Positions 24,120-55,869 of a stretch of 64,000 nucleotides of DNA are shown in pieces; the first letter of the stretch is position 1; each line of letters opens with the position of its first letter. Both the position numbers and the translations under genes were made by a program. Below the pieces are notes generated by a model that was not told where the DNA came from, ran no database searches, and saw only the letters and a program-made list of their open reading frames with translations. The stretch lies in assembly GCA_043228905.1 (NCBI GenBank), contig JBHGNT010000006.1, forward strand, positions 21,452,001 to 21,516,000, in the 5' to 3' direction. This DNA comes from Azolla caroliniana (lineage: Eukaryota; Plantae; Polypodiophyta).

Positions 24120-24845
24120 AGATGTATGTCAATTCTACGATGTATGTTGTATTTGTTCTAATTGTTTTAGCTAATATAAATAGACTATTGTGTGTTAATT
24201 GTTTTAGCTAATACAAATAGACTATTGTGTGCTAATTGTTTTAGCTAATACAAATAGACTATTGTGGATTGAATAGACTATTGTTTTGATGTGTTTAATT
24301 GTTATAGCTAATACAAATAGCTTAAAAAAAATCCTTAGCTATGTGGATTCAATAGACTATTGTTGTATGTGTTTTAATTGTTATAGCTAATACAAAAAGC
24401 TCAAAAAAAATCCATAGCTACGTCGATTGAATAGACTATTGTTGTATGTGTTATAATTGTTATAGCTAGTACAAATAGCTCAAAAAAAAATCGATAGCTA
24501 TGTGGATTGAATAGACTATTGATGTATGTGTTCTAATTGTTATAGCTAATACAAATAGGTAGAAAAAAAATCCATAGCTATGTGGATTGAATAAACTATT
24601 GCTGTATGTGTTCTAATTTGTTTTAGCTAATATAAATAGCTCTCAAAAGAATCCATAGCTATGTGGATTGAATAGACTGTTGTTGTATGTGTTTAATTGT
24701 TTGTATAGCTAATACAAATACCTGGAAAAAAACAATCCATAGCAATGTGGATTGTATAGACTATTGTTACATGTGTTTTAATTGTTATAGCTAATACAGA
24801 AAGCTCTGAAAAAAAAATCCATAGCTATGTGGATTGAATAAACTT
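24120..24845. repeat. Tandem array of about 78-bp units
   Basis: Repeated AATTGTTATAGCTAATACAAATAGCT-An-TCCATAGCTATGTGGATTGAATAGACTATTG. Confidence 0.9.
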
Positions 24846-24919
24846 GGGACAGGTTGAATTGAATCATCAGAAGTATTTTTTTTCAGTATATTTTTTTTTT
24901 TGCCTGGGTTTCTGATGAT

Positions 24920-24933
24920 TTATATATATAAAT
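24920..24933 (+). promoter_or_regulatory. Putative TATA box of the pri-miR529
   Basis: TATATATATAAAT about 55 nt upstream of the miRNA 5' arm. Confidence 0.5.
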
Positions 24934-24987
24934 CTCTGAATTTTAAATGAAAATCCATCCCATCCAATTATGTGGTGTGTGAGGTGC

Positions 24988-25008
24988 AGAAGAGAGAGAG
25001 CACAGCCC
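24988..25008 (+). ncRNA. miR529: Mature miR529-5p
   Basis: 21-nt sequence matching the miR529 family consensus as recalled (AGAAGAGAGAGAG[C/U]ACAGCCC). Confidence 0.88.
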
Positions 25009-25449
25009 AGTCCTTATAGACAGAGATCTAATCTATCTAGATTCTATAATGTATGTAATATGTATATATAAATCCCTCTGCTACTACCACTTTCTAGTAG
25101 TATGTAGTCAGTCAATACCTGTTACTTCATCACTAACAATACTCCATAATAATAATTATAATAATACTTATATAAATTCTTTTTATTTCTCTTCTGGCTG
25201 CCAAATTAGTAGTAGTCTTCTGGCTGCTAAATTAGTAGTAGTCAATGTATGTACCTGCTGCTAGCTAGTTTTTTTTTTCCCCCTTTCTTCTGCTGCATAA
25301 TTAGTCGCACAATACCTGTTAGCTCATTAAAGTAAATTTTTCTAATTACAAATTACTATATAGTATTGAATTCCATGTTTGTGAGGTTTATTTTCTGCTG
25401 CTGCATTAGTTTAATCATAATCATAATAATAATAATAATAATCATAATT

Positions 25450-25832
25450 TGTTTCTTATTATCTGCTTTTTGTACAAATCACCTAGGTCACAAATTGTTT
25501 CTGATTATCTGCTTTTTTGTACAAATCATCTAGGTCACAAATTGTTTCTGCTGTTACATTTATTAGGCTAATAATAATAGTAATTAAGAATAATAAAGTA
25601 TTGGTTTCTTATTAATCTGCCTTTTTTATACAAATCATCCAGGCCACACTTTTTTTTTCTGCTGTTACATCTATTAGATTAATAATAATAAGAGTAATAA
25701 GAATTGGTTTCTTATTAATCTGCTTTTTTTGTACAAGTCATCCAGGCCACAAATTATACTGCTAATTAGCTTAGATCAGTAAGTATAATAATTATTGGTT
25801 TCTTAGTAATCTGCATTTTGTACAAATCATAC
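25450..25832. repeat. Diverged tandem repeats inside the miRNA loop
   Basis: About 5 copies of GTTTCTTATTAATCTGCTTTTTGTACAAATCATC(C/T)AGG(C/T)CACA with variable spacers. Confidence 0.8.
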
Positions 25833-26150
25833 AGCTAATTTGTCTTAGGAATCCTTAGCTTACTTACTGCTTGGCACAGATTTTCCGATTCCGCCTAATG
25901 GGATGGATGGATGGATGAATCTCTGTGCTCAAGGATTTCGGCATAATCCACATAAATAAATAAAAATCAGTTTTTAACGATTTGCTTAAAATTTCGGAAC
26001 AATTTTAAGCAAATGGGCTCCTGAGATCATATAATTTTATGTTAGATATAATGATTTTGCGGGCTGTGCTCTTCTCTCTTCCGCCCCTCTCACCCCACAC
26101 ACACACACTCAACAGTCATACACTGCATCTCTCTCTCTCTCTGTTATTGT

Positions 26151-26374
26151 TGTCTGTCTGATTTTTAAAAATTCAAACTACTAAATTCCCTCAAAAGTCT
26201 GTCTGATTTTTAAAAATTCAAACTACTACATTCCCTCAAAAGTCTGTCTGATTTTTAAAAATTCAAACTAATAAATTCCCTCAAAGTCTGTCTGATTATT
26301 AAAAAATTTTAACTGATAAATTCCCTCAAAAGTCTGTCTGATTTTTTAAATTTCAAACTAATAAATTCCCTCAA
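26151..26374. repeat. About 45-bp tandem repeat, 5 copies
   Basis: GTCTGTCTGATTTTTAAAAATTCAAACTA(C/A)TAAATTCCCTCAAAA. Confidence 0.9.
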
Positions 26375-26417
26375 TATATATCACCATGTTATGCCTTGCT
26401 TCTTGTTGGGAATCTGA

Positions 26418-26675
26418 GTCAGAATCAGAATCAGAATCAGGCCGAAGAAGAATCCGTTGAATCAGACAAAGAATCCATTGAATCAGAAGAAGAATCCGTT
26501 GAATCTAATAAGAATCCGAAGAAGCATCCGTTGAATCAGAATCCATTGAATCCGAAGAAGAATCCGTTGAATCAGAAGAAGAATCCGAATCCATTGAATC
26601 CGAAAAGAAGAATCCGTTGAATCAGAAGAAGAATCCGAATCCATTGAATCAGAAGAAGAATCCGTTGAATCAGAT
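26418..26675. repeat. 21-bp-based minisatellite
   Basis: GAAGAAGAATCC(G/A)TTGAATCA units and GAATCA hexamers. Confidence 0.85.
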
Positions 26676-27067
26676 GAGAGAGGGGAATCATTGGGACGCT
26701 GATTTTGGAAATTGTACTGCCATGTGTCGTTTTAATTGAATTGAGTATGCTATATATTTATTCTTTGTCTGTATATACACATATATAAACAAACATTTGC
26801 TGCAGAAAACAGAGCCATGATATACGGATACGGATACGGATACGGTGCAAAAAACAGAGCCCTGATATACGGATACGGTGCTGCAGGATAAATACGGATA
26901 TGGATGCTCCTACGTACCATGTCTCCGTACGTTTTACGTCGCGTCCGTACAATTAAAAAAAAATCGAAACAAGCTAAATTGTACGTATTATTAGCTGATG
27001 TTGTGATTTACTATCATTACGTTGCATACTTATATAGTTGAAAATCAAGCAAGTAAATTTGTACGTA

Positions 27068-27585
27068 TTAATTATTGTGATTATTATTATTAGACCAAGT
27101 TCATTAATATGATTACGATTATTGTTACTAATTATTGTGGTGATTATTATTAGTAGATTACGATTGTTACTAATTATTGTGGTGATTATTATTAGTAGAT
27201 TACGATTGTTACTAATTATTGTGGTGATTATTATTAGTAGATTACGATTGTTACTAATTATTGTGGTGATTATTATTAGTAGATTATGATTGTTACTAAT
27301 TATTGTGGTGATTATTATTAGTAGACCAAATTTATTAATATGATTACAATTATTGTTACTAATTATTGTGGTGATTATTATTAGTAGACCAAATTTATTA
27401 ATATGATTACAATTATTGTTACTAATTATTGTGGTGATTATTATTAGTAGACCAAATTTATTCCCATGATTATGATTATTACTATTAATTACTGTGGTGA
27501 TTATTATTGTTAGACCTAATTTTTTACGATGATTACGATTCTTATTATTAATTATTGTTGTGATTATGATTATGATTATGATTAT
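27068..27585. repeat. AT-rich minisatellite with 42-bp and about 63-bp units
   Basis: AATTATTGTGGTGATTATTATTAGTAGATTACGATTGTTACT repeated. Confidence 0.9.
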
Positions 27586-28477: not shown

Positions 28478-28640
28478 AAACAGAGATCCAACGATAAATT
28501 ACGATTGGAATTATTCCACTTTAACAGAGATCCAACGATAAATTACTATTGGAATTATTCCACTTTAAAAGAGATCCAACGATAATTTACTATTGGAATT
28601 ATTCAACTTTAACAGAGATCCAATGATAAAATATTATTGG
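28478..28640. repeat. 44-bp tandem repeat, about 3.6 copies
   Basis: AACAGAGATCCAACGATAAATTACTATTGGAATTATTCCACTTT. Confidence 0.85.
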
Positions 28641-31600
28641 ATATATAAAGGTACACAAATTCTTTTTAGTTTTAATCTCTTGTACAACTGGATCATACTA
28701 GATTCCATTGAAATACTTTCATGGTTTGAAAACTTGTTACATTTTGTGAGTAAAAAAAGCCTCAGGGAAGATGCAGTATTTGCAGATAATTGTATCATAA
28801 AAGATTTGACAAAATTCCTCCAATATATATATGCTCAATAATTATTATTTTGTGTTAAGTACTACAATCTCTTCGCTCACATTCATTATAAAAGTACCTT
28901 TTTTCTTCTGTTATATAAACTGAATCAGAATCATAAGAAGAAAAACCTTCATATTCAATGCAATACAATACATGTTGGCTACTCATCAAATGTTATATAA
29001 TCTACAATTGTTTTTGCAACATGACCAAAGAGGTACAATGTAATATGAATGTGGACGTGTAATATTTTACAATAATAAGTTTGTTCGCCGTGACCAAGTA
29101 AGTTGTTTGTTCCATCATGACGTAATTTCCTTGGGGCATTATTGTTACAATGTGTTGTGGTCGAGATCTTCACCATTCCTTGATTGTACGAAAGGCTTCA
29201 TTGTATTTACTCCATTGTATTTGAACAGATGATGGGTAGGATCGTGTAAAAAGTGCATTTGCTCTTAACACACAATTCATGGGAGGATCGATGCCTTTGT
29301 TGATGGATGGCCATTGTTGTATCACCCCTACACCACACTAATTCTTCATCCCCATTTTGTTTTCATGGCAACTGGTTTTGGGCTTAAAAAGACTCCTCTC
29401 GACAATATTGATAAAGATGTCATGAACTGGTTTCTACTTTGCACCGACTAAGTTCACAAAACTTGCACCAGAGCTTCACAGGGAAAAGAATCTCCATGAT
29501 CCTATCTTTAATATGATCAATCCATATTCCTCGTTAATTTGGTTATGTTTCCCAAATTGAGGGATTTTTTTTCTCGCAATTGAAGTATTGTTTCTTTTTG
29601 GACTTTACTTTTCATGACAAGGGGGATGTTTGTAAGTATTTGAACTTTGATTTTGTGTAATGATGCTCATCGATGATGTGGTCTCATTCATTCTCAGAAA
29701 AGTTTGTGAGGGATCTTTTTCTCGTCTAGTTTTAATCGAGGTCACCATGGCGTTTTAATTGTGGATCTAGGGCTATAGCTAGAACAAGTTATTATCATGT
29801 GTGCTTGTAGTCTAAATCGTTCAATATCAACTCATATAGTCGTTGGTAGTGGTCTCTAGACTTTGAACACAAGCTTTTGGCATCCAAGTTATATATGATA
29901 CACAATATATGACTTCTCTTAAAGCTACATGCCACGTAGAAGTTGACATCATCAACAATGGTTAACTATATCAACAAAGGATTGTGGGCCCAAATTTATA
30001 TTTCCACCAAGTTAAGCATTTGCTTCAATGGTAACTCGATTATGTATTGGCTTTACGGTATACCCCAACAATAGCACTTGAATAATCATCCATTCTCTTC
30101 TACCTCTTATTGTCGTTATTGCAAGCATTCATGTGTCCTCTAGGGATAGTTTATCCTTCATTGCTCATCAGAGTTGGTTCTCCAAACCCTTAAGATATTA
30201 GGCACAACAATTTTCCATGAACTTGCTTCTAACCTATCCAAGCTATATGGCAACCTCATATTAGACATAAATTCTCTGTTTACACATTAATTGAGAGGAT
30301 GCGTTTTAATAGCATCAAGAAATCACCAAAAACTCAAATGTAGGATTCAAAATTTATGCACAATGTTTCATATACTAAATTCAATGATCAAAGTTTATTC
30401 CCACAATGAAAGTCTTAGGTAGTTAGACTCGAATATTAAACACTTGGAATCCTATCATTCTTTGGCAATATCTATTTTCCCCACATATGGTTATATATTT
30501 GGGTACTTCTACACCCCCCCTACACCCCCCCCCCCCCCTTCCCCCCCCACATGAGCCACATGTACTTGTACATAATTAACCATTTTCGTAGATATTCACC
30601 TTGATGCCTCATACGTTATATAAATTCTGACCTTATTAGAAAATCTATTGGAACGGAACATTCAGTGCTTGTACAACGTATTTAATGAACACCAAATGTA
30701 GGTCATCTCCTTGAACAAGATGTGTGTATAATAAATATAGATACAAAGATTTTGGCCAATTTATTACTAGTTTCATTCAAGTTACACTTGAACATGTATC
30801 AAATCGTTGGTTTTTTAGTTTAATAAGGGAAATCAATACCTTTGGGTGTCATAGATTTCTTGCATGTATGTGGAAATCCACCATGTTAACTTGCACATAG
30901 TCAATACCAAACATACTTTCAAGTGATTAAATGGGGTTCATATACTACTATATTGACTATCATCGTGCAAGCTAACGAATCATTTCACAACGATCAAACA
31001 TCAGATCCAAAGTGAACATAATTGAATGATGTGCTCCACAATATTGAAAAATAGAATATAGCCATGCAAGTGTTTACATTTAAATGGAGTTTCCATGTCG
31101 TGGGTAAGTTGTTAAAAGTTGCGTAGAATAACAAGGTCTGTTTTAAAAGGTTCTCTCAACATAAATAGGCTCAAGATATCAACTACCTACATATATGCTA
31201 CCCATTGAAAATCCAATCAGACAAAACTTCTAGAGTAGTGGAGCGATAAGAACATTGTGTAAGAGGGAAAAAATAAACAAGATGTATGGATCAGAAAACT
31301 CCAAGCACTACATGTTACTAATTATATTGCTTAGTTTTGTCTAGTTGTTGCTAAGGTTGTTTAGTGAAAATCCTAAAGAAATGCATTTTCTTCCTAACAA
31401 TCCATACTGGCATCTGGCAAATACAAGAATTTTATATGGGGTGCAAATCAAGATTTGTCTTTGTTTCCTTGAAATAGGTTACTACTCATCTAAGTGGATT
31501 GTAGGAAAAATGGTGGTAAATGTATTATGAGAAAAACCAAGATTTATAATTTACTATTTGAGGGTTTGAAATATTGTTTAGGAGAAAATATATATGGTAA

Positions 31601-34600: not shown

Positions 34601-36302
34601 ACCCCACTGTAAAATCCTATTCTCATGGAACCTTGATTTCAAATCTAGCTTGGATGGGAATATGACACCAGATTCCAAGAATTTGGTAATATTTGAAACA
34701 ATCTCAATCTGATTCCAAGTCATTGAAATGTCCAAGTTTAATTGTGACTTAGTAGTGATATCTTGGGAAACACTGTTACATCAAATTAAGCTAGAAATGC
34801 ATGCCTTTGTTCAATGAAAGCTAGAATCTTCCATGAAAGCATGTAGATTAATTTCTAAAACACAATTGGTGGTCCATATTTATGTTTGGAAATTTGTAAT
34901 CCAATGAAAAGTTCCATGAAAAACCTTAGCAAATTAGACTTCAAATTTATGGATGGAGATTACATCATGGCAAGCCACAAAAGGTCATGTCAAACTTTAG
35001 GCATCCTTATAACTCGGTTTTGTTGATCATTAAGAGCGACTTTCAATATGGCCATGTTTTCATTAAGATGTAGTAACAATTCAAAAGTATCCAGGCACCT
35101 ATTTTATACGTTTAAATAAATTTTGGGGCGTCAAATGAATTTATCTTACACAACTATTGGCCCATGTCAAATAGTGTCTCATTAAGAAACTTGTAGGTAT
35201 CAAATTGAATGATGATTTTAACATTTTAAATTTAGCTTTAGATGGGATAGAATGTTCGATACCCTTTTTCACAATGCATTGAGTCACATGGAAATATTGG
35301 CGTTTGTGCTTACAATATTAAAAAAGGACACTTGCAACAAGCAAGAAGTTTAGTGGAGATATTGAATGTCTTCCTGAAGTGCTAGATAAATCCATTGTTT
35401 TGAGATATTATAATCTAAAAGACTTTATGATTATGCATCTTCAGATACTAATGCATGTTCTGAAATATTTGGATTTATACACTTTATAATAAGACAATCT
35501 TAAAAAGAAAAGAAGCATGGGGATTAAATTGCTTGACCCATTTTTCTTTGGATAGAGATCAAATGTATTGAGCACCCTACGAAAGGCTTTTACATATTGC
35601 ATGTCCCACTAATCAATGTGAACCAATTCTAAGAGGATGAGACATTCTAAGACATTTTGTGTAGCTACAAAAGTAGGAATGATTGAGCACCAAATAAGAT
35701 TCTTTTGTATAAGGAACCACAGACTGCATTGCAAACACCATTGGGGTCTTCGAAGATTGGCCATAACAAAAACGTCTCAAACTGCACTAAAGCTTGGTAC
35801 TCTTGCCCATCGCCCCATTAGTTTGTTTGTTTTCCACTATCTTAATTTATATAACAATATGGCAAATTATGGCAATATAGCTTATGATAAATTCAACAAT
35901 TAATGACCATCATCAATGAACTTCGAAAATCGGCGCGCAAACGTTGTGATTTTTGTATCAGGTATATTAAGACTTTTGAGCATTTAATTTGACCTCCTAC
36001 CCAAAGCATAGCAAACTAGCAAATTTAATGCATATAATAGAGATAGACACATTAAGCATATGTATTTGATTTGACACACAGCAGCAAATTTAGATTTGGA
36101 TGCTTTAGGTAGGAGTTGAAAGTTCTGAAATTTGAGAATACAAGAATAGAAATAAAGATCGAAAGACAAAATACGTGAAACCTCCCAAGTTCCATGTATT
36201 TTGTCATCCTGAATCCATTGCCATTTCGCTCACGTATTCCAACCCATTTTTGTACCATCTGAGGAGATGGAAAAATTAACTAATGGAAAAAGGGAAATTT
36301 GA

Positions 36303-39300
36303 TCACATTGGTAACAATTCATGTATGTTGTCATCTTGAATCCGTTGCCGTTTCGCGCACGTCTTCAAAACCATGGACTTTTGAGCCATCTGAGGAGGTG
36401 GAGATCTCTCAAACCTTGCCAAATCAAGAGAAGGGGAACCGAAGAGACCTTTCGACTGCAGTTGCAATTTGCTTAACACCACCTTTTCAGCAAACTTGGG
36501 TTGACAAAGAGAGCCGTCAGTACCTTCTTTCTCCAGCTTTCTCAACCGAGCTTCATAAACTTGGGCCTCATCTTTCTTTCCAAGACTTGAACAAGTGTTT
36601 ACCAAATACCTTAAGCATTCCATGTTGTTTGGATGGAGGCAGAGGATTTCTTTATGCTTGGCTATTGCCTCACAATAAGCCCCAATTTTCCGGTAACATG
36701 ATGCAGCCATTAATTGCCATTTTACCTGCTAGAAACAAACAAGAATGTCCAATAACTGATAGACTTAACACCCATTTCAGAAATTTTCTCATTTATGGAT
36801 GCAGATTACAATGATGCATGCAGATTATATAAATAATAAAGGAAAGACACTTCAATGATCACATATATGCATATATGATGAGTATTTGTGTGTATGTGTA
36901 TCCATATGTATGTATGCATATGTGTAACATACATATGCACATTCGTATATGTAGATATACAAATACATATACACATGAATAAATATATAAGGATGAAAAT
37001 ATGACTCCAAGTAGAAGATACTTTAATGAACTCCAGCTAATTGTATGATTCAATACCTCATTTGGTTGAATCTTTGAAGCCAAATTAAATATGGGTATGG
37101 CTTTTTCATAAAGCTCTTGTTGCACATAGAATGCACCTAGGAAGGTGATGATATCCATGTTTACTGGATGCACACGATGTGACTCGTTATAGTAATAAAG
37201 AGCTTTCGCCTCATCATTGCATTTGGTAAACAAAGCTCCTAACAATGCCAAAATACCAGCATCATGCATCGTGCTTGCTATGACTATCTCAAGAAACTGA
37301 ATTGCTTGTTGAGTGTTTCCAGTCAATTCACTGAGATGTCCAACCTGTCAATATACGGCACAAGATATTATTGAAGATAAGGTATTTTGCATCTATAAAT
37401 ATTAACATAAACAAAACATTTTAAACACAAACTATGAAGACAAGCCTCAGAAATCTTGTCCTGGTGGAAGGAACCGAATAGCTTAATATGTATCAAGTGA
37501 TATCAGGCAAATGGAAAGGTCAAATGTTTCGCATGTCCCTAGAGTAGATGCCATCATATTGTAGGAAAGAACAAACAAAATATCAAAAAGCAAATCATTG
37601 AACAAACATGCCAAAAGATTTAGTAGACATTGCAGAAAAGTAAAGGACAAACAAACATGCTTCAAAATTTTGTAGACATTGCAGCAAAGTAAAGGCAAAT
37701 AGCTAAATGACCCACTAATTCACGACAATAGCTAGAACTATACCTGATATAGAATTTCAACATTGTTTGGAAGCTTCTTGGCCAAGTCTTTGAATGTTCT
37801 GAGGGCTTCAGGAAGTAAACCGAGCTTCTTCTGGACTAAACCAACATTATAGAAAGCCTCCATGATATTTCCGTTGAGTTCAACCGCTTTTCTGTACAAT
37901 ACCATAGCACCTTCTGCATTATCCTGTTTTCGCAAAATTTCAAATCGTTGCATGACATTAAGCATAGGAACTAATAGAAGTTTAATCTACTCCTTGTAGA
38001 TTCAGAGCAACATTATTACCTGAGAAAATAAACAATTCCCAAGGTTAACTAGCGCATATGGATTCTCATGATTGTTACTTAATGCAAGTTTCGCATACTT
38101 TTCTGCATTTTCAATGTCACCCTCTAGGAGGTACAAGAATGAAAGGTTTGTAGATGCACAAGTCTTTAAATCCTTCTCTTTTCGCTCGAATGTCTTTAGC
38201 AAAGAGATGGCCTATAATACAAATACGCAAATCTATCTTAAACTACAGGGTAATTTTAGGACAAATTAAAAGCAAGTAAAAAATTAATGTGTAAACTCTA
38301 TTTTCCAAATGGGCTCCATAGAAGAACACTCATTTTCAGAAAGAATTGTCAAAAATAATACCTCAGAAAATTTCCTTTTGTGTAAGTATTGAATGGCTTT
38401 ATGCATCTCAACTTCATATGCAAGAGTCATGTATTGCTGATCTTTCAAGATACTGATAACCCAATCATATCCTTCCACAAAAATTGTGCTTATTACTGGA
38501 GCAATAATCCTAGCTGCTCTAAATATGTACTTCTGGGCTTGCATTTGTCTTGACTGAAGCTCAATAGATAAGTCATCACTCTGAAATGGAAAAAAGAACT
38601 GAATTCTATAAATGGAAGTAAATTATTTAGATCTTTATAAAACAGTTTCTTTAATTCAGAGTAGAAAAGGCACATTTTTGGGTCAAATTTATGTGATTAA
38701 TGTCGTAACACCTATTCAAAAGACGTTTTCTGGTTAAACCTGTGGATTAATGAACCAACTTGTATACATAAAAGATGAAATCCAATTTGAAAAATGCAAT
38801 GTGATATGGTAAGTTCGTGGACTGAAATGTCCCAACTTAGTTACACAGTAAGTAAAATTCAGCTGTTTTACCTTTTGGAAACATGTTGAGTCTTCCTCAA
38901 TGTCATCATCAACTTCTGGATCATAATGTCTAACCAAAAGCATTTTGGTAAAGCAGCTCTTCATTTTCTCTGTATTCCCCACTATATAATAGCAAACTAT
39001 CAGATTGTATCCTGACTGATGGTCATACTTGATTTCCATAACTGCCTCAAAAGATTGCATTGCATCCTATTAACGCATGGTGTAAACTCATTTGATTAAG
39101 TAAGAGCTGCATTCAAATAGCATCTTGTTAATTTAGATTATGGTGCAAATGTAATAGTTCTACAATGTGACTGACACTCCTACATAATCTTGTGCTTCCA
39201 TATTTCACTATCGGATACATTGTCCTTTCAGTCCTTACCCTCTTCCAAGTTATGGACTTTACAACAAGAAAAACTAGTAGAATAGCTAGTGTTCAAAACA

Positions 39301-42300
39301 CTCATATATCCTTAGCAAATATATCCATTAAAATAAATCCATATAGGTTCCTTTTGAATATGATTCAGATATGCAATTCATCAATAAATTAATATTAGCG
39401 CTGTTAGTTATGGAAGGTTATGGACGGGCTTTGGACCACTTGACAAAAACAATTAAACTGAATCAGTAGAATGCACACATGAATACATATATTCTGTTTT
39501 TTCCTCTAAAAGAATGCTTTTAATATACATTAAAAATAGCTGGCTTTCCATAAAGGAAGTTAACCAAAGATTCTAGCAACTTTTATTCATCAGACATTAA
39601 AAAACTGAAGACAAAGGACAGTCAAGAAACAAACTTGGTATTGTCCCATATGCATAAGCGCATTCCCAATGTTCCGCATTATTCTATAACGGGTTTCTTT
39701 ATGTGAATTCGGAATCTGATCCAATGCCATCCTGTACATCTTTATGGCGAGCAAATAATTCTCTTGTTTGTAATAAATGTTGCCCATGTTGATTCGCAAT
39801 CTACCTGCTTGTGTGAACTGCAAAATGTTATCTTTTTATAAGTTTTGCTTCATGTTAAAGTTCATATTTTATAAGCTTCTTGGAGTTATTTAATCTAGCT
39901 AAATAAGGTGATTCATACTTGACAGACATCAATATGGTCGTGGAGACAATTAATCACCTGTTTATTCTTTACTATCTGTGAATATGTGCTCAATGCTTCT
40001 GAGAGAAGGCCACTCTTCTCATATTGGTACGCAAGATTAAAACACACCGAAAAGGTCAGCTCAATATTCATCTGATCTACCTGTGAAAATACTAAAATTA
40101 GCCACCAAGACTGAGGAGCAAAACTCAAAATGTCACTGATTAGAATGCCCTTAACTTTCCAAGCATCACCAGAATACCCCCTCCAAGGTACAAAATTTAT
40201 TCAGGTAAGATTTTCATACCTATGGGTACTCCCATACAATAAGTTAGGGGTATTTTTGGGTATTGCTGCAATTCATATTATAGGGATTGTCTTTAGCATC
40301 ATAAACTTACTCGAGAAGCTTGTTCACGTTGTCGGCATACTAATCTCTCTTTCCTGCCGGCCTCCTTAGCTCTTTCTAATGCAGTTGTATGATCTCCCTA
40401 TAAAAACAGAATCATATTCATACTTGAAATCAACATGATCACCCTAGCTCTAGTTTATTTCCATCTCCATGGACTTTTCTTTGCTTATGGATGAGATAAT
40501 AGTTTATATTCGTCCTGATGAACTTTTCTTTTGTATATGGATGAAATATGATATATGCCATTACATGATGAATCTTGATCGTAACATTTTCAGTTGGATG
40601 GCTACTTTGACTTTCGAGAAAGGTTAACATATCTTTCTTTTTTTCTAGTCTCTGACACGAAAGCGACCCGAATCAGGTTTGTATTGAAGAAGGTACATTT
40701 AGAACTCACATTAAAACTTGCGGCTGCGCTTTCTTCTAAAAGTGTGTGCACCAACTGCTCAAGTTCTCTTATTTGCATTTCTGGATCGCCTTCATCTCTT
40801 CTTTGTGATAAGGGAGTCAAAGAACGTGAACCTTGGTTGATTGGATCAAATTTATTACCCTGTAAAATTATTGGAAATTTTGTTTCTATTACAGAAAATT
40901 AATCATTACTTACACGTATTCTCAGGATCAAGAAAAACAAAATTTCGAACCTTAGACAAATAAAATATACATGCCCCAAGGAGAACAGAAGTATGGGTCA
41001 TTGATGATCCTAAGTCCAAAAACTGCGTTAACATAACCTGGAGGCTTGTATTATCATGATCTAAACGTTACTGCCATCACATCCCAGAAGTATATAAATG
41101 CAGATGTACATGTAGAGAGACATTTTGCAGAGAATCTACACAAAAACTGTATATATTGCTAAGAACATCTCTGTGCACGCTCGAAGGAGAAGATTGCGAA
41201 TATAGATGAAATATTTTAACATTTCAAAATAAGTGTACGAGGTAAGATACCACACCTTTGATGAATACCCTGCGGCCCTGACAGCCGTCATGGATCGTGA
41301 TGTGTCACCAGAAGTTCCAGACCGTGCTGTCAGACAATTAGATCTTCCAGAACTGGATGGCCTCCATAGAGACAGAGTTTGTGGTGTGGGCGTTCGACTC
41401 CTTGCTTTTGTAGATGGACATCTTGATGTGTCTGAAATCGTTTCAACCTGTAAAGATCTCACGTGAATTAATATACATAGGAAAGGACTATAGGGATAAT
41501 ATATCAGTGTAGGAATATCTGGCATTATGTTTAAGGCAGTCAAAGAAGTGGCATAATTACATAGATAACATTTAGTCTAAGAGTGCATATAAATGATGAT
41601 GTCAAATGCATTCTGGATAAGACACCTAAGATACTTATTCCCAAATGATGTGTCGAATGTGGAACTAAGCAATTCATATCAAATCTACGATGAATCATTC
41701 ATATGGACTGGTTTTGTAATCGAACGGAAGAATTGGTTAACTGAGAAGCTAGTGCAGACATATGACAATTTAAAAACCGAATATGTCCTTCTCAATCCTA
41801 TTGTATGTCTTCAAAATCCTGAAATGGCCTAATATGAGGCCTCTCCAAAGATGTAAATGGATACTGGTATCCATTCCCTTAGCATTACCATGGTTTCTGG
41901 TTAGCAATCATACAAAACTTTCATGAGCATCTATATTTAAACACTACTAGTACATCAAGTCCCTTAGCAATATACAAATATTTTCTATTTAGTTCTTGCA
42001 CAAATTATCGGAGTACCTATATTAACAAGGTATAAAAGATGAATGTTAAGTAAAACCTGCGATCCCGATCCAGAAGGGGGCCTGCTAGGCCCAATGATGT
42101 GGTCATAAACAGTAAAATCTCCTCTTCTAAATGGTTCACTGGTCTTCCGGTACTGCCAACAAAAGATATGGGATAAATTAAAAAAAACATGTAAAAAAAC
42201 AAAAGAATTATGCATCAAATGATCGAATGATAAACATATATCAAACGGGAATTATAAAAACAAGATGGAAAGAATAAAGGAATTCTGCATTGACCAAAAT

Positions 42301-42917
42301 AGAAACAGGGGAGAAAGCACCGACGAATCGTCAACTGTTTCAATATTTATTAGAATACCCCCAATTTCCCATAAATTTCCAGATTACCCTTCTGTATTAG
42401 AGAGCTTAATTGATGTGAGCATTTTTTTTTGCTCTACAAATATATAAAAAAAAATGCATCAATGAAAATATATAAAATCTAAACACGTCAAAAAGGGAAT
42501 GCAGGGAAAGAAACACATAAAACAAAATACATTACAACAACTAAACCAAGAAAAAATCAGGAAAGAAAAGGAATGAACTGAAAGAAACAATAGAGTAACA
42601 AAATTAAAGACTTAAAGAAAAATAGCAAAACAGGAACGAATTTCATGAAGAGAGAAACAACAGAAACAAAAACATAAAAAAACCAAGGAATCGAAAAAAC
42701 GAATAAATTAGCAAATAATACTGGATTAAACCTGAAACTTGTGATCCGATGAACAGTGAGCAGACGTAGGATTCCTTTCTTCTGGGTCTTCTTCTTCTTC
42801 TTCTGCTTCTTCATTATAAACGTCGTAGAGATCGTTATAACGGATACTCCGAAAGAAATCATTAGAATCGGGTATAGTTGAAGAGGCTCCAAAGAGATTC
42901 TTCAGCATTCTAGCCAT
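36303..42917 (-). CDS. IFT88: Intraflagellar transport protein 88 (TPR protein), 13 exons, about 837 aa
   Basis: Exons (- strand): 42917-42732, 42152-42057, 41447-41256, 40859-40710, 40397-40311, 40080-39958, 39817-39635, 39066-38872, 38580-38362, 38211-38020, 37923-37744, 37344-37057, 36725-36303; all GT-AG; 2514 nt open. Motifs NDLYDVYN, RSMTAVRAAGYSS, LLEES, AKEAGRKER, AGRLRINMGNIY, AIKMYRMALDQIP, STNLSFLY, IQPNEVKWQLMAASC, C-terminal ELLP. Start codon and exon 2 are less certain. Confidence 0.95.
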
Positions 42918-43110
42918 GGCTATGGCTTCTTCATGCTTCAAATTACCTGCAGGCACGTCTTAACTACCACCCCCCCCTTCCCCTGTTTTTTGCGTTTAGG
43001 GTAATTCCCAAACATACCCTTCAACACACTTCATCTCCTCATCTCTCAGCTTCTACAAATCCCCCAAAATACCCCTCCTATCATCCTTCTTCACACTTCT
43101 CTCTCTCTCT

Positions 43111-44366
43111 CTCTTTCAAGTGGTAGCACTCTTTCAAGTGGTAGCTTTTATTCATCGGATACATAGTCAACCACAAGATAGGATATCCCGTCGAGCCTTT
43201 GAGGCATCCCGATCCTTACATGTGTCTGGAGACACCAACTCTTGGTATAGCATTGTGGTGAGTTGGTTATTTGCAAATGGCATAGACATTAATAACCTAC
43301 CTCCCCTTAAGTACAACCATGGGACTGATCAAACTTTAATCTCTCGTGAAGATCGTAATAAAGTGATACGCCAAGAAATATGGCAAATCTACACTCGATA
43401 CAAATGGATCACCCCACGAGAGCCACTCCCATCTAAAATGGTGTACTATAAGGAACACTTCTTGCACTTCTCTAAGTTAGGGTTTATTACACGACCAAGA
43501 TACCTAGATACTTTCTTATCAAATGCACTAAGGGTGGCCATTGGACAACTTAGGATATCATCTCACCAACTTGAGATTGAGAATGGTCGAGCTAATAGAG
43601 TCCCTAGAGAGGAAAGGCTATGTAGGTTATGCCACATAGAGATAGAGGATGAGTATCACTTCACATGCAAGTGCCCAACTTATGCCGAGATACGGGCGGA
43701 ATACCAAGACATACTAGGACCCTCTCCCACCCTCTCCAAACTATTAGATACCCCGAGTGTAAAGAGACTAGGTAGGTATATCTTAGAGCTAAAACAACAT
43801 AGGGAGGATAAACTACAAAGTGTTAATCATAACCCTTTTACTACTCATCAACATGTACCTAGTGTAATTTTTCAGGAACATGGGGAGACGATGAATGTGG
43901 ATACACTTATGCCGCTCGGCCTCTCCCTTGAGGAAGCAGAAATACAAAGAGCAACCAAACGTCCTCGGATGTTGGGCTTCAACACAAGTCAACGTGGAGT
44001 AGAAAAGATTAAGAAGATAAGGGAACGTGAGCTACGTCGACTCGAAGCTATGGTTGGGGTACCTCTTACATGGGGACCACGGGCCACATCCACATCATGG
44101 CAACCCTTTGACCCCCCGCTTCTCTTCGAGAGACTTGGATGGAAATGAAATTAGGCCTAGTATAGAATCATTCTCATTGTAGAACATGTTTTTTATATAG
44201 AACATGTTTGTTGTTTTCTTAGAACTATTTAGCTTAAACTCTATTTTATCTTATTTTTATTTTTACTTTTGATGAATGGGTAAATATCCCATTTTTGTTG
44301 TACACCTTTTGTCTCATGGGCCAATTTTGGCCTTAGAAGACGTTAATATTTCTTTCTTTCTTTCTT

Positions 44367-53900: not shown

Positions 53901-55869
53901 GCAAAAGAAAAAAGGTATCCATATAACAGTGTCCAATATGAGCTTTTGTAAACCATGGTTACAATATGAGCTTTTGTAAACCATGCTAAGCCAAGTGCAC
54001 TAACAGTGAAGCTGAGACATAGTATCATGTCTTGCCCACAAAAAGATGGTCATAATGTTATGAGGATAACTTAATAGTCTTTGAGCACATTAGCAAAACT
54101 CTAGGACATAATTTTGTAAAACACCTAAATATTGTAGGAGGATGTCTTTTGATTCTCTTTTATTGTCCCACACCCCTATCCATGCATATTCTACACCAAT
54201 TAGCTCACTATGCTCTATCTCACATGATCATAATGTTAGGAGCCTCACCTTGACAACATAATAATTGTAGCGAACAATCCTAGTTACAAAAGATGAAAGA
54301 ATTCTTGTGCAATTCATTCATATTGGGTACATCTCGGAATCTCAGTATTGCACAATACATTTATTAACACTGAATTGATGAGGTTGCGCTTGGGATATTC
54401 TCAAACTATAGAAGGAAAAAACACACTCCCATCTTTAATCATGATGGCATAATGGCAAATTCTTCGCATTCCTTAAAGTTTTGTCCTGATCTTATTGTGC
54501 ATTGCAATAATATAATTGTGATCGTATATTGTCATTACAAATAATATAATTGTCATTGTATATTGTCATTGTAATGATGTAATTGTGATTGTATATTGTC
54601 ATTACAATAATATAATTGTGATCGTATATTGTCATTGTAATGATGTAATTGTGATTGTATATTGTCATTACAATAATATAATTGTGATCGTATATTGTCA
54701 TTACAATAATATAATGGTGATCCTCATTAACTTTGTGATGGTGTTTAAAACTAGTGTAAAATTGCATATACTATTGTCACACTTGTAGGTGGTCGAAGAT
54801 TGCGTCGCACCTCCCGGGCCGCAGTGACAACGACGTGAAGAACTTCTGGCACACGTTCTCGCGACGGAGCTGGCGTGCCCAGTATGCCTCCACTACTACT
54901 ACCTCAATAAGTACTCAATATGACACCTTAAATATAAATGGACCCACCAATAATAACTACATAACCAACAACAACATTGCCTATAGTACTACTACTCACC
55001 AAGAGGCCAACACTACTTATCATGGTACTTCTAATAGTGTGATAAGCTCACCTACATATCATTATCATCATCATCATAATCATAATCATAATCATAATCA
55101 TCGTCATAATAATCATCATCATCATAGGAATAACTTTATTATGAGCAAGACAATGATATCCTCCTCCACCTCATCATCATCATCATCAAATAACAACCAA
55201 GTAGGATCATTGTATACTGCAAATGATCATGAAGAAGATATGAAATTAATGATGATGCTCAAACCACCATTAATGGATGGGCTCATAAGGATCAACAATA
55301 ATTACCAATTAGGAGAGGAAGAAGAAGAAGAAGAAGAAGATGATGATGATGATGATGATGATTATGATTATGATGAAGAAGAAAGAGAAGGAGAAGATGA
55401 CTATGATGAAGAAGAGGAAGAGGAAGAGGAAGAAGAAGAAGAAGATTATGATGATGAAGAAGAAGATGAGGATGGATATAATGGTTTCCATAGATTGGAA
55501 GGAATAGATGGTCAAGATTATGATGAGGTGATTTATAAGTGCGATTATGAACATGGTGGTGTGATTATGAATGATATGGAGCCAGTGATAATAAGCAGCT
55601 GCAGGTCACCAATTCTGGTGCAGATCGATAATGGAGATGCTGCAAGCAGCAATCCAGCATGGCCAGAATCCCATAATCATACTAATAATCATAGTAGTAG
55701 TACTAGTAGTAGTGCAGGAATTAATGGTAATCATCAGGCCATGGATTCATCTAGGAAATCAGGGAGTGGTAATGATAGTAGTTATAAGCCCCCTGAAGGA
55801 TTAGATCTCATCGGATGGAAACTGCAGAACCCTAATTTACCCATCCCTTCCACTTGGAGAGAACAGTAA
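50995..55869 (+). CDS. R2R3-MYB transcription factor, 3 exons, 436 aa
   Basis: Exons 50995-51094, 51976-52105 (canonical 130 bp), 54789-55869; WSPAEDEML…YGTRNW…[13 protein letters not shown]…[23 protein letters not shown]; intron 2 has a GC donor; poly-H/N, poly-S and poly-D/E C-terminus. Confidence 0.93.
52400..52560. repeat. About 24-bp tandem repeat in MYB intron 2
   Basis: CGTTACTAGCCTTAATCACGAT(G/C)T, about 6 copies. Confidence 0.85.
54505..54715. repeat. 33-bp tandem repeat near the 3' end of MYB intron 2
   Basis: AATTGTGAT(C/T)GTATATTGTCATT(AC/GT)AAT… about 6 copies with alternating variants. Confidence 0.85.

Follow-up and report, generated by a model that had tools for sequence, protein, structure and literature searches.

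A MIR529 locus with widely separated arms

Can a conserved plant miRNA be cut from a hairpin whose two arms lie more than a kilobase apart, or does splicing have to bring such arms together? This question is raised by a miR529-type sequence in the window (the whole 64-kb stretch of DNA that was analysed), for which a first-pass annotation had offered two mechanisms: an intron-split hairpin, or a giant loop processed from its base by DCL1. The 21-mer at 24988-25008 on the plus strand is identical, with no mismatch, to Ppt-miR529d, Scu-miR529b-d and Cri-miR529a in the parts of the published supplements that were compared (PMC8541648), so its description as an exact miR529-type sequence holds. 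The same 21-mer has also been cloned or sequenced as a small RNA in the fern Pleopeltis (PMC5426797).

With its own reverse strand excluded, the best partner of this sequence in the 64-kb window is 26061-26082 (-38.7 kcal/mol; runner-up, -26.9 kcal/mol), the site that had been proposed as its only good complement. The resulting duplex contains 20 pairs, all Watson-Crick, with an end mismatch (24988/26082) and, as had been noted, one bulge: a single U at 26072/26073 on the star side, located between miRNA nucleotides 9 and 10 or 10 and 11. Allowing 2-nt overhangs, the predicted miR529* is the 22-nt sequence 26063-26084, in agreement with the star arm originally placed there, and it is locus-specific. 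Below the duplex and in register with it, the claimed basal pairing of about 17 nt is present: 14 of 17 positions of 24971-24987 pair with 26083-26099 without a bulge, a strength that only 0.22% of 25-nt windows match for this 17-mer. The complete 38-nt 5' arm pairs at -61.3 kcal/mol, compared to -35.7 kcal/mol at its second-best site in the 64 kb. The pairing of the arms beats anything else in the window by 25 kcal/mol, and the arms are real.

The distance between the 5p and 3p arms, verified as 1,052 nt, is about fivefold the longest MIR529 loop measured in the material available to us. When the unspliced 1,151-nt form was folded, the duplex had a probability of ~1.0, and 20/20 duplex pairs were retained in all eight of eight loop shuffles. 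The MFEI of this form is -0.72. Its foldback of 1,129 nt exceeds the 300-nt limit for MIRNA annotation (Axtell and Meyers), such that a 300-nt folding window would indeed miss the locus; the foldback reaches 300 nt only if 25051-25879 is taken out.

In other respects the locus has the features of the family: the 5' arm holds the miRNA and the 3' arm its star, mismatches are few, the duplex is free of a secondary stem, and the ~17-nt paired basal stem corresponds to the base-to-loop determinant. The 21-mer is preceded by GC and lacks the UGAC start of miR156, as in the fern MIR529 loci seen in the sources compared, and this 5' flank rules out a miR156 identity. A search of Rfam at its gathering and E-value thresholds returned zero miRNA family matches at the locus, as expected because the arms are split. 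Judged by its sequence, duplex and basal stem, the locus is a MIR529 locus.

Structure of the upper stem and loop

Above the duplex, the first-pass annotation had placed an upper stem between 25013-25033 and 26041-26053. This pairing did not stand, as its energy of -8.6 kcal/mol is equalled by 57% of windows, which is chance level, and it uses 26041-26045, which lies inside the intron ending at 26045 that the same annotation proposed. We found a stronger upper stem between 25009-25047 and 25898-25937 (-33.1 kcal/mol, the top score in 64 kb), which beats 100 of 100 loop shuffles (shuffle mean, -18.4 kcal/mol). It comprises at most 31 bp in four helices, the first three of which have probabilities of ~0.6-0.7 in the full fold. 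Zero differences are listed in its 3' strand in three related genotypes, a count that is uninformative at 2% divergence. Between this strand and the star is a side branch of 123 nt (25938-26060) that contains a 14-bp hairpin at ~25980-26014.

The upper stem closes an AT-rich apical loop of 850 nt (25048-25897; GC ~29%). Old local tandem duplications, all within 25145-25834, account for 491 of the 1,052 spacer nucleotides, and their copies differ by 6-24% (drift of ~15%). When compared with the rest of the 64-kb window, the loop gave zero matches beyond these local duplications. A transposon insertion was rejected as the source of the loop, since within the window it consists of local duplications with no match elsewhere.

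On the plus strand of the 64 kb, the motif TATATATAAATC occurs only at 24923 and 25063 (0.07 occurrences expected), so one TATA box precedes the hairpin, where it had been annotated (24923-24934), and a second lies inside the loop. The region 24917-24934 is a perfect palindrome, which makes the upstream motif readable on both strands. From the spacing to this TATA box, transcription would start at ~24957-24962. Coordinates of all features are collected in Table 1.

Table 1. Features of the MIR529 locus, with positions in the window
Feature	Position	Strand	Evidence or remark
TATA-box motif	24923..24934	+	12-mer found twice on the plus strand in 64 kb
Basal stem, 5' strand, 17 nt	24971..24987	+	14 of 17 positions pair with 26083-26099
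miR529-5p	24988..25008	+	identical to Ppt-miR529d and Scu-miR529b-d
Upper stem, 5' strand	25009..25047	+	-33.1 kcal/mol with 25898-25937
AT-rich apical loop, 850 nt	25048..25897	+	RNA-like contigs cover 25279-25535 and 25703 onward
Candidate intron, 829 nt	25051..25879	+	3' end crossed unspliced in three runs
Second TATA motif, possible internal promoter	25063..25074	+	motif copy inside the loop
Upper stem, 3' strand	25898..25937	+	pairing with 25009-25047
Side branch, 123 nt	25938..26060	+	fold; retained in all three runs
Predicted miR529*, 22 nt	26063..26084	+	bulged U at 26072/26073 beside miRNA nucleotide 10
Basal stem, 3' strand	26083..26099	+	26097 is C instead of A in three related genotypes
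Downstream exon lacking a long ORF; 45-nt tandem repeat, other repeats rich in GAA/GAATC	26100..26713	+	
GT-AG intron, 92 nt, U-rich, GC 29%	26714..26805	+	spliced in three runs
Downstream exon, to end of contig match	26806..26981	+	contigs

Comparison with fern MIR529 loci and neighbouring sequences

In the parts of Table S4 of Xie et al. 2021 (PMC8541648) that were compared, Scu-miR529b-d of Salvinia cucullata have the same 5p sequence as the present locus. Aligned by eye, Scu-miR529d and 26061-26085 agree in 24 of 25 nt; the bulged base is the one difference, and the position of the bulge is shared. Counted by eye, its spacer is ~86 nt as opposed to 1,052 nt here, and the AT-rich loop of Scu-miR529a, the longest in those parts of the table, is ~210 nt. 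Relative to the Salvinia MIR529 loci, with which it was compared by sequence, the present locus has tandem duplications and a side branch. In a metagenome contig (L008, positions 140-420) we found a paralogous MIR529, ending in U, ~0.6 kb upstream of DExH-helicase-like gene exons; its loop is 203 nt with 24% GC. Among the entries compared, other fern MIR529 loops are also long and AT-rich (~210 nt in Scu-miR529a, 203 nt in L008). Our literature search, mostly of non-subscription papers, found no described MIR529 with a spacer such as the one reported here.

The neighbouring gene on the minus strand (~36300-42920) is the intron-rich intraflagellar transport gene IFT88, the presence of which fits a plant with flagellated sperm. 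Compared individually, six of its exons share 75-78% identity with the Adiantum and Ceratopteris proteins, 70% with that of Marsilea and 57-60% with those of bryophytes and a lycophyte, a comparison that places the host among the ferns. Site patterns in these exons do not group it with Marsilea, which 1 site favours, compared with 6 for Pteridaceae and 4 for a place outside both. Using IFT88 as an anchor, we found no MIR529 within 10 kb at the Adiantum locus; the metagenome contigs with IFT88 are <2 kb long. L008 was rejected as an ortholog, as the metagenome pattern scan had yielded a paralog instead. The sample from which L008 comes also holds an IFT88 sequence near that of the window (46 mismatches in 939 columns), so the L008 plant is probably a related fern.

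Tandem arrays at 24150-24844 (a 37-nt unit x3 and an 80-nt unit x7) stop ~80 nt short of the MIR529 TATA box, and more occur at 26152-26374 (45 nt), 27121-27572 (42/63 nt) and 28479-28641 (44 nt). A tendency to duplicate locally characterises the entire locus. Exonic repeats at 26386-26703 on the plus strand encode pieces of an E/S-rich acidic peptide in three frames, broken by indels, and related genotypes differ by several indels in the same interval. This stretch may represent a small acidic ORF that is decayed or polymorphic; alternatively, a second start here would account for the higher RNA depth. A protein-coding role of the downstream exons was rejected, as they contain only short, frame-broken acidic repeats. 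Farther away, retrotransposon ORFs in a decayed state are clustered at positions 1-21600 (gypsy- and copia-like reverse transcriptase, RNase H and integrase; GC ~43-56%), and a LINE-like ORF lies at 43120-44148. A 344-aa low-complexity ORF at 54835-55869 on the plus strand, with His-, Ser-, Asn- and Glu/Asp-rich tracts, may be the initial exon of a regulatory protein.

RNA across the loop and star arm

RNA data consisted of four sequencing runs in the form of assembled contigs without a library record, three of which, from three studies, hold the locus; repeats at 25140-25177, 25403-25454 and 26406-26448 were skipped in the comparison. The three locus-bearing runs share the same ~2% differences from the window, so they derive from a close relative or another genotype. 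They are RNA-like, with 29-57 Mb of short contigs, and all three runs skip 26714-26805. As this interval is a spliced GT-AG intron with a good acceptor, the transcript strand is plus; it is spliced in 3/3 runs, and zero contigs retain it.

We observed collinear unspliced contigs at 25732-26211 (run X1), 25853-26192 (X2) and 25703-26229 (X3). Candidate acceptors 25879 and 26045 are thus crossed unspliced in every one of the three runs, and candidate donor 25779 in two of them. No splice joint, fork or loose end was seen within 25009-26060 in the three runs, whose low-depth contigs drop rare forms. Contigs within the loop have depths of 5.7 (25467-25535) and 4.7 (25279-25501), and the star contigs have depths of 7.3 and 4.8. 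The contigs of X1 overlap to form a continuous path between 25732 and the spliced 3' part; such contigs are strandless on their own, and tiling does not prove a single molecule. Zero contigs from the three low-depth runs cover 24860-25278, which includes the 5p arm. The 3' part of the transcript has 1.5-2 times the depth of the rest, which may reflect 3' bias or a second start. As the RNA runs across the star uncut, the RNA observed is unprocessed.

In the interval proposed for a junction check (24960-26120), these contigs revealed no joint in the parts of 25279-26120 that they cover. Between the two mechanisms first put forward, the RNA favours retention of the loop; contigs that cross 25879 and 26045 unspliced weaken the intron-split version and do not refute it. 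At the 3' end, contigs of two runs depart from the window at 26981 and share one loose end (81 and 146 nt). The window has a GT at 26981-26982, so another intron may follow, or the 3' end may have diverged; no partner for the loose end was found by eye among the stronger acceptors up to 36.2 kb.

Proposed base-to-loop processing with the loop retained

We propose, with a probability of roughly 0.45, that pri-MIR529 is cut base-to-loop from a hairpin that retains its kilobase loop, probably inefficiently. Pol II would initiate ~30 nt downstream of the 24923 TATA box, and the 38-nt 5' arm is predicted in silico to pair with its 3' counterpart, which lies 1,052 nt farther on. DCL1 would then read the junction of single- and double-stranded RNA below the 17-bp basal stem and make its first cut 17 bp up. 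By the rules of base-to-loop processing and the conservation of the MIR529 base, a second cut 21 nt further on would release miR529/miR529*. The product would target SPL mRNAs, the known targets of the miR529 family. A single transcript over both arms, its dicing and the targeting of SPL are steps that we infer.

Published work on both the family and the enzyme is consistent with this order of cuts. MIR529 is conserved for ~17 nt below the 5p arm, and base-to-loop processing has been proposed for it (PMC8541648). In base-to-loop processing, DCL1 measures 15-17 bp from a single-strand junction and cuts again ~21 nt on (PMC6237749), a rule that the 17-bp basal stem fits. Arabidopsis MIR157c (Moro et al. 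2018, PMC6237749) resembles the present locus in having a stem of 15-17 bp below the duplex and a branched region above it; the distal region of this type is ~125 nt, as opposed to 1 kb here. As a branch starts in our locus at the very end of the duplex on its 3' side, a ruler for loop-to-base cutting is absent. We suggest that the kilobase loop is tolerated because the position of the cut is set from the base.

Sequence divergence adds to this argument. The loop would have expanded by local tandem duplication within a small original loop that the upper stem closed. Despite 6-24% divergence among the loop repeats, the miRNA still has the family sequence and 20/20 of its pairs are Watson-Crick; by a rough estimate, the neutral chance of zero change in 43 nt is 0.01-0.11. 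Intact arms alongside drifted loop repeats suggest that the arms have been under selection while the loop grew. Branched terminal loops are reported to reduce efficiency or to give abortive cuts (PMC6237749), and the branched junction directly above the duplex may likewise lower processing efficiency, leaving uncut loop RNA to accumulate. In its boldest form, which we hold at somewhat less than even confidence, this reading has an ancient conserved miRNA cut accurately from an unspliced hairpin with arms >1 kb apart, a distance more than three times the 300-nt limit, and loop length acting as a brake on output. Several observations weigh against retention of the loop. Zero contigs span both arms, the position of donor 25051, only 4 nt past the upper stem, would be a coincidence, the MFEI of the unspliced form is only -0.72, and an unspliceable form of miRtop14 with a 700-nt distance between its arms yielded almost no miRNA (PMC11706861).

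Possible splicing of the loop in a minority of transcripts

As a less probable but substantial alternative, a minority of transcripts may lose most of the loop by splicing, against a background of heavy retention; 25051-25879 is the most plausible intron, and 25051-26045 is another candidate. The compact hairpin would be diced at once, leaving mainly retained poly(A) RNA, and output would depend on splicing as in miR444 and miRtop14. All four splice motifs named in the first-pass annotation are present. GT and AG are common, with 52 GT and 46 AG in the loop, and two of the four score poorly on a rough matrix built from 12-13 sites of the window's own introns: 25779 (-0.5) and 25879 (-1.6). Donor 25051 (6.5) and acceptor 26045 (6.1) score like real sites, and 25051 ties for second-best of the 52 GT in the loop, which favours splicing. 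The score of acceptor 25879 speaks against it, falling below 12 of 13 true sites in leave-one-out scoring, although the matrix is small. Introns from 25779 were rejected, as this donor is weak, is crossed unspliced in two runs and would leave 880-1,050 nt.

The structural case for removing 25051-25879 is that the donor lies 4 nt past the upper stem and the acceptor 18 nt before its partner strand. Its removal keeps the strong upper stem with ~21 nt between the stem ends, giving a 300-nt hairpin. Folding of the spliced and unspliced forms, which the first-pass annotation had called for, gave an MFEI of -0.92 with this interval removed in place of -0.72, and the unspliced form already pairs its duplex fully; removal of 25051-26045 gave a 134-nt hairpin with an MFEI of -0.95. 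The fit to the stem ends was noticed post hoc. In composition, 25051-25879 (U 41%, GC 29%) is intron-like, equal to the proven intron 26714-26805, and it contains all of the tandem duplications, but U-richness cannot tell an intron from a non-coding loop.

Precedent also favours splicing, as both published cases that we found with arms more than ~450 nt apart are intron-split. Like the present locus, miRtop14 of Solanales (Medina-Calzada et al. 2025, PMC11706861) has arms several hundred nucleotides apart and a retained poly(A) form; it makes both spliced and retained poly(A) RNA. Three runs show no spliced form of the present locus, whereas a spliced form of miRtop14 has been cloned and splicing is required (PMC11706861). 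It is lineage-specific, whereas miR529 is land-plant-wide. Grass miR444, as described in the source consulted, likewise has a long spacer between its arms, and its splicing is documented, whereas no junction was seen here in three runs (PMC11706861). The two also differ in their surroundings, in that no coding gene overlaps the present locus. The miR444 loci are antisense to their MADS targets.

The RNA itself also tells against splicing. In the three runs it crosses 25879 and 26045 with neither a joint nor a fork or loose end, the loop has about the depth of the star exon, and the neighbouring intron has no retained contig. As the defining junction was sought at low power and not found, the locus is not filed as intron-split.

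Less likely: a non-productive locus or a chance complement

A locus that no longer yields miR529, either because growth of the loop largely stopped processing or because RNA starts at the 25063 TATA motif without the 5p arm, is unlikely. The internal copy of the same 12-nt motif downstream of the 5p arm would allow such a start, the 5p arm is uncovered in 3/3 runs, and uncut RNA across the star accumulates. In the same direction, multiple MIR529 paralogs exist in ferns (six in Salvinia, ten in Ceratopteris), and base 26097 of the basal stem differs in relatives. Absent 5' coverage is, on the other hand, expected from 3' bias at a depth of ~5 together with the filters of the contig search, and neither the 5p arm nor the star or basal stem has decayed amid 6-24% loop drift. 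A star-only RNA would leave the 5p arm without selection. Such an RNA would carry a miR529-complementary site with its bulge at the cleavage position, between miRNA nucleotides 9 and 10 or 10 and 11, and might serve as a weak decoy for a paralogous miR529. The bulge is at the same site in the compact Salvinia hairpin in the table parts compared. Known mimics of the IPS1 type carry a 3-nt bulge opposite miRNA nucleotides 10-11 (PMC2908682), whereas the bulge here is 1 nt.

A chance complement or an assembly artefact, with arms from different loci or mis-assembled apart, is very improbable: the 5' arm-loop junction (25009-25278) has no independent coverage, but arm pairing is 25 kcal/mol stronger than at any other site in the 64 kb, the best partner of the bases that follow the 5p arm is 25898-25937, a segment adjoining the star in independent genotypes, and hallmarks of fern MIR529 are found on both flanks.

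Significance for plant miRNA biogenesis

Retention of the loop and its splicing in a minority of transcripts both break a working rule, and it is probable that one or the other applies. If the loop is retained and the hairpin diced, the 300-nt ceiling for plant miRNA hairpins would not be biochemical, and the locus would provide a natural test of whether base-to-loop cutting by DCL1 ignores the loop. If splicing occurs in a minority of transcripts, the locus would join miR444 and miRtop14, the only intron-split cases that our search found, as the first of its kind from a fern or from a family shared across land plants. On either reading, catalogues of fern miRNAs built with windows of 300-500 nt would miss this locus; the Azolla miRNA study used a 500-nt window. 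If the retained kilobase loop is confirmed as the source of miR529, then fern genomes would hold conserved MIRNA loci that are excluded by pipeline design.
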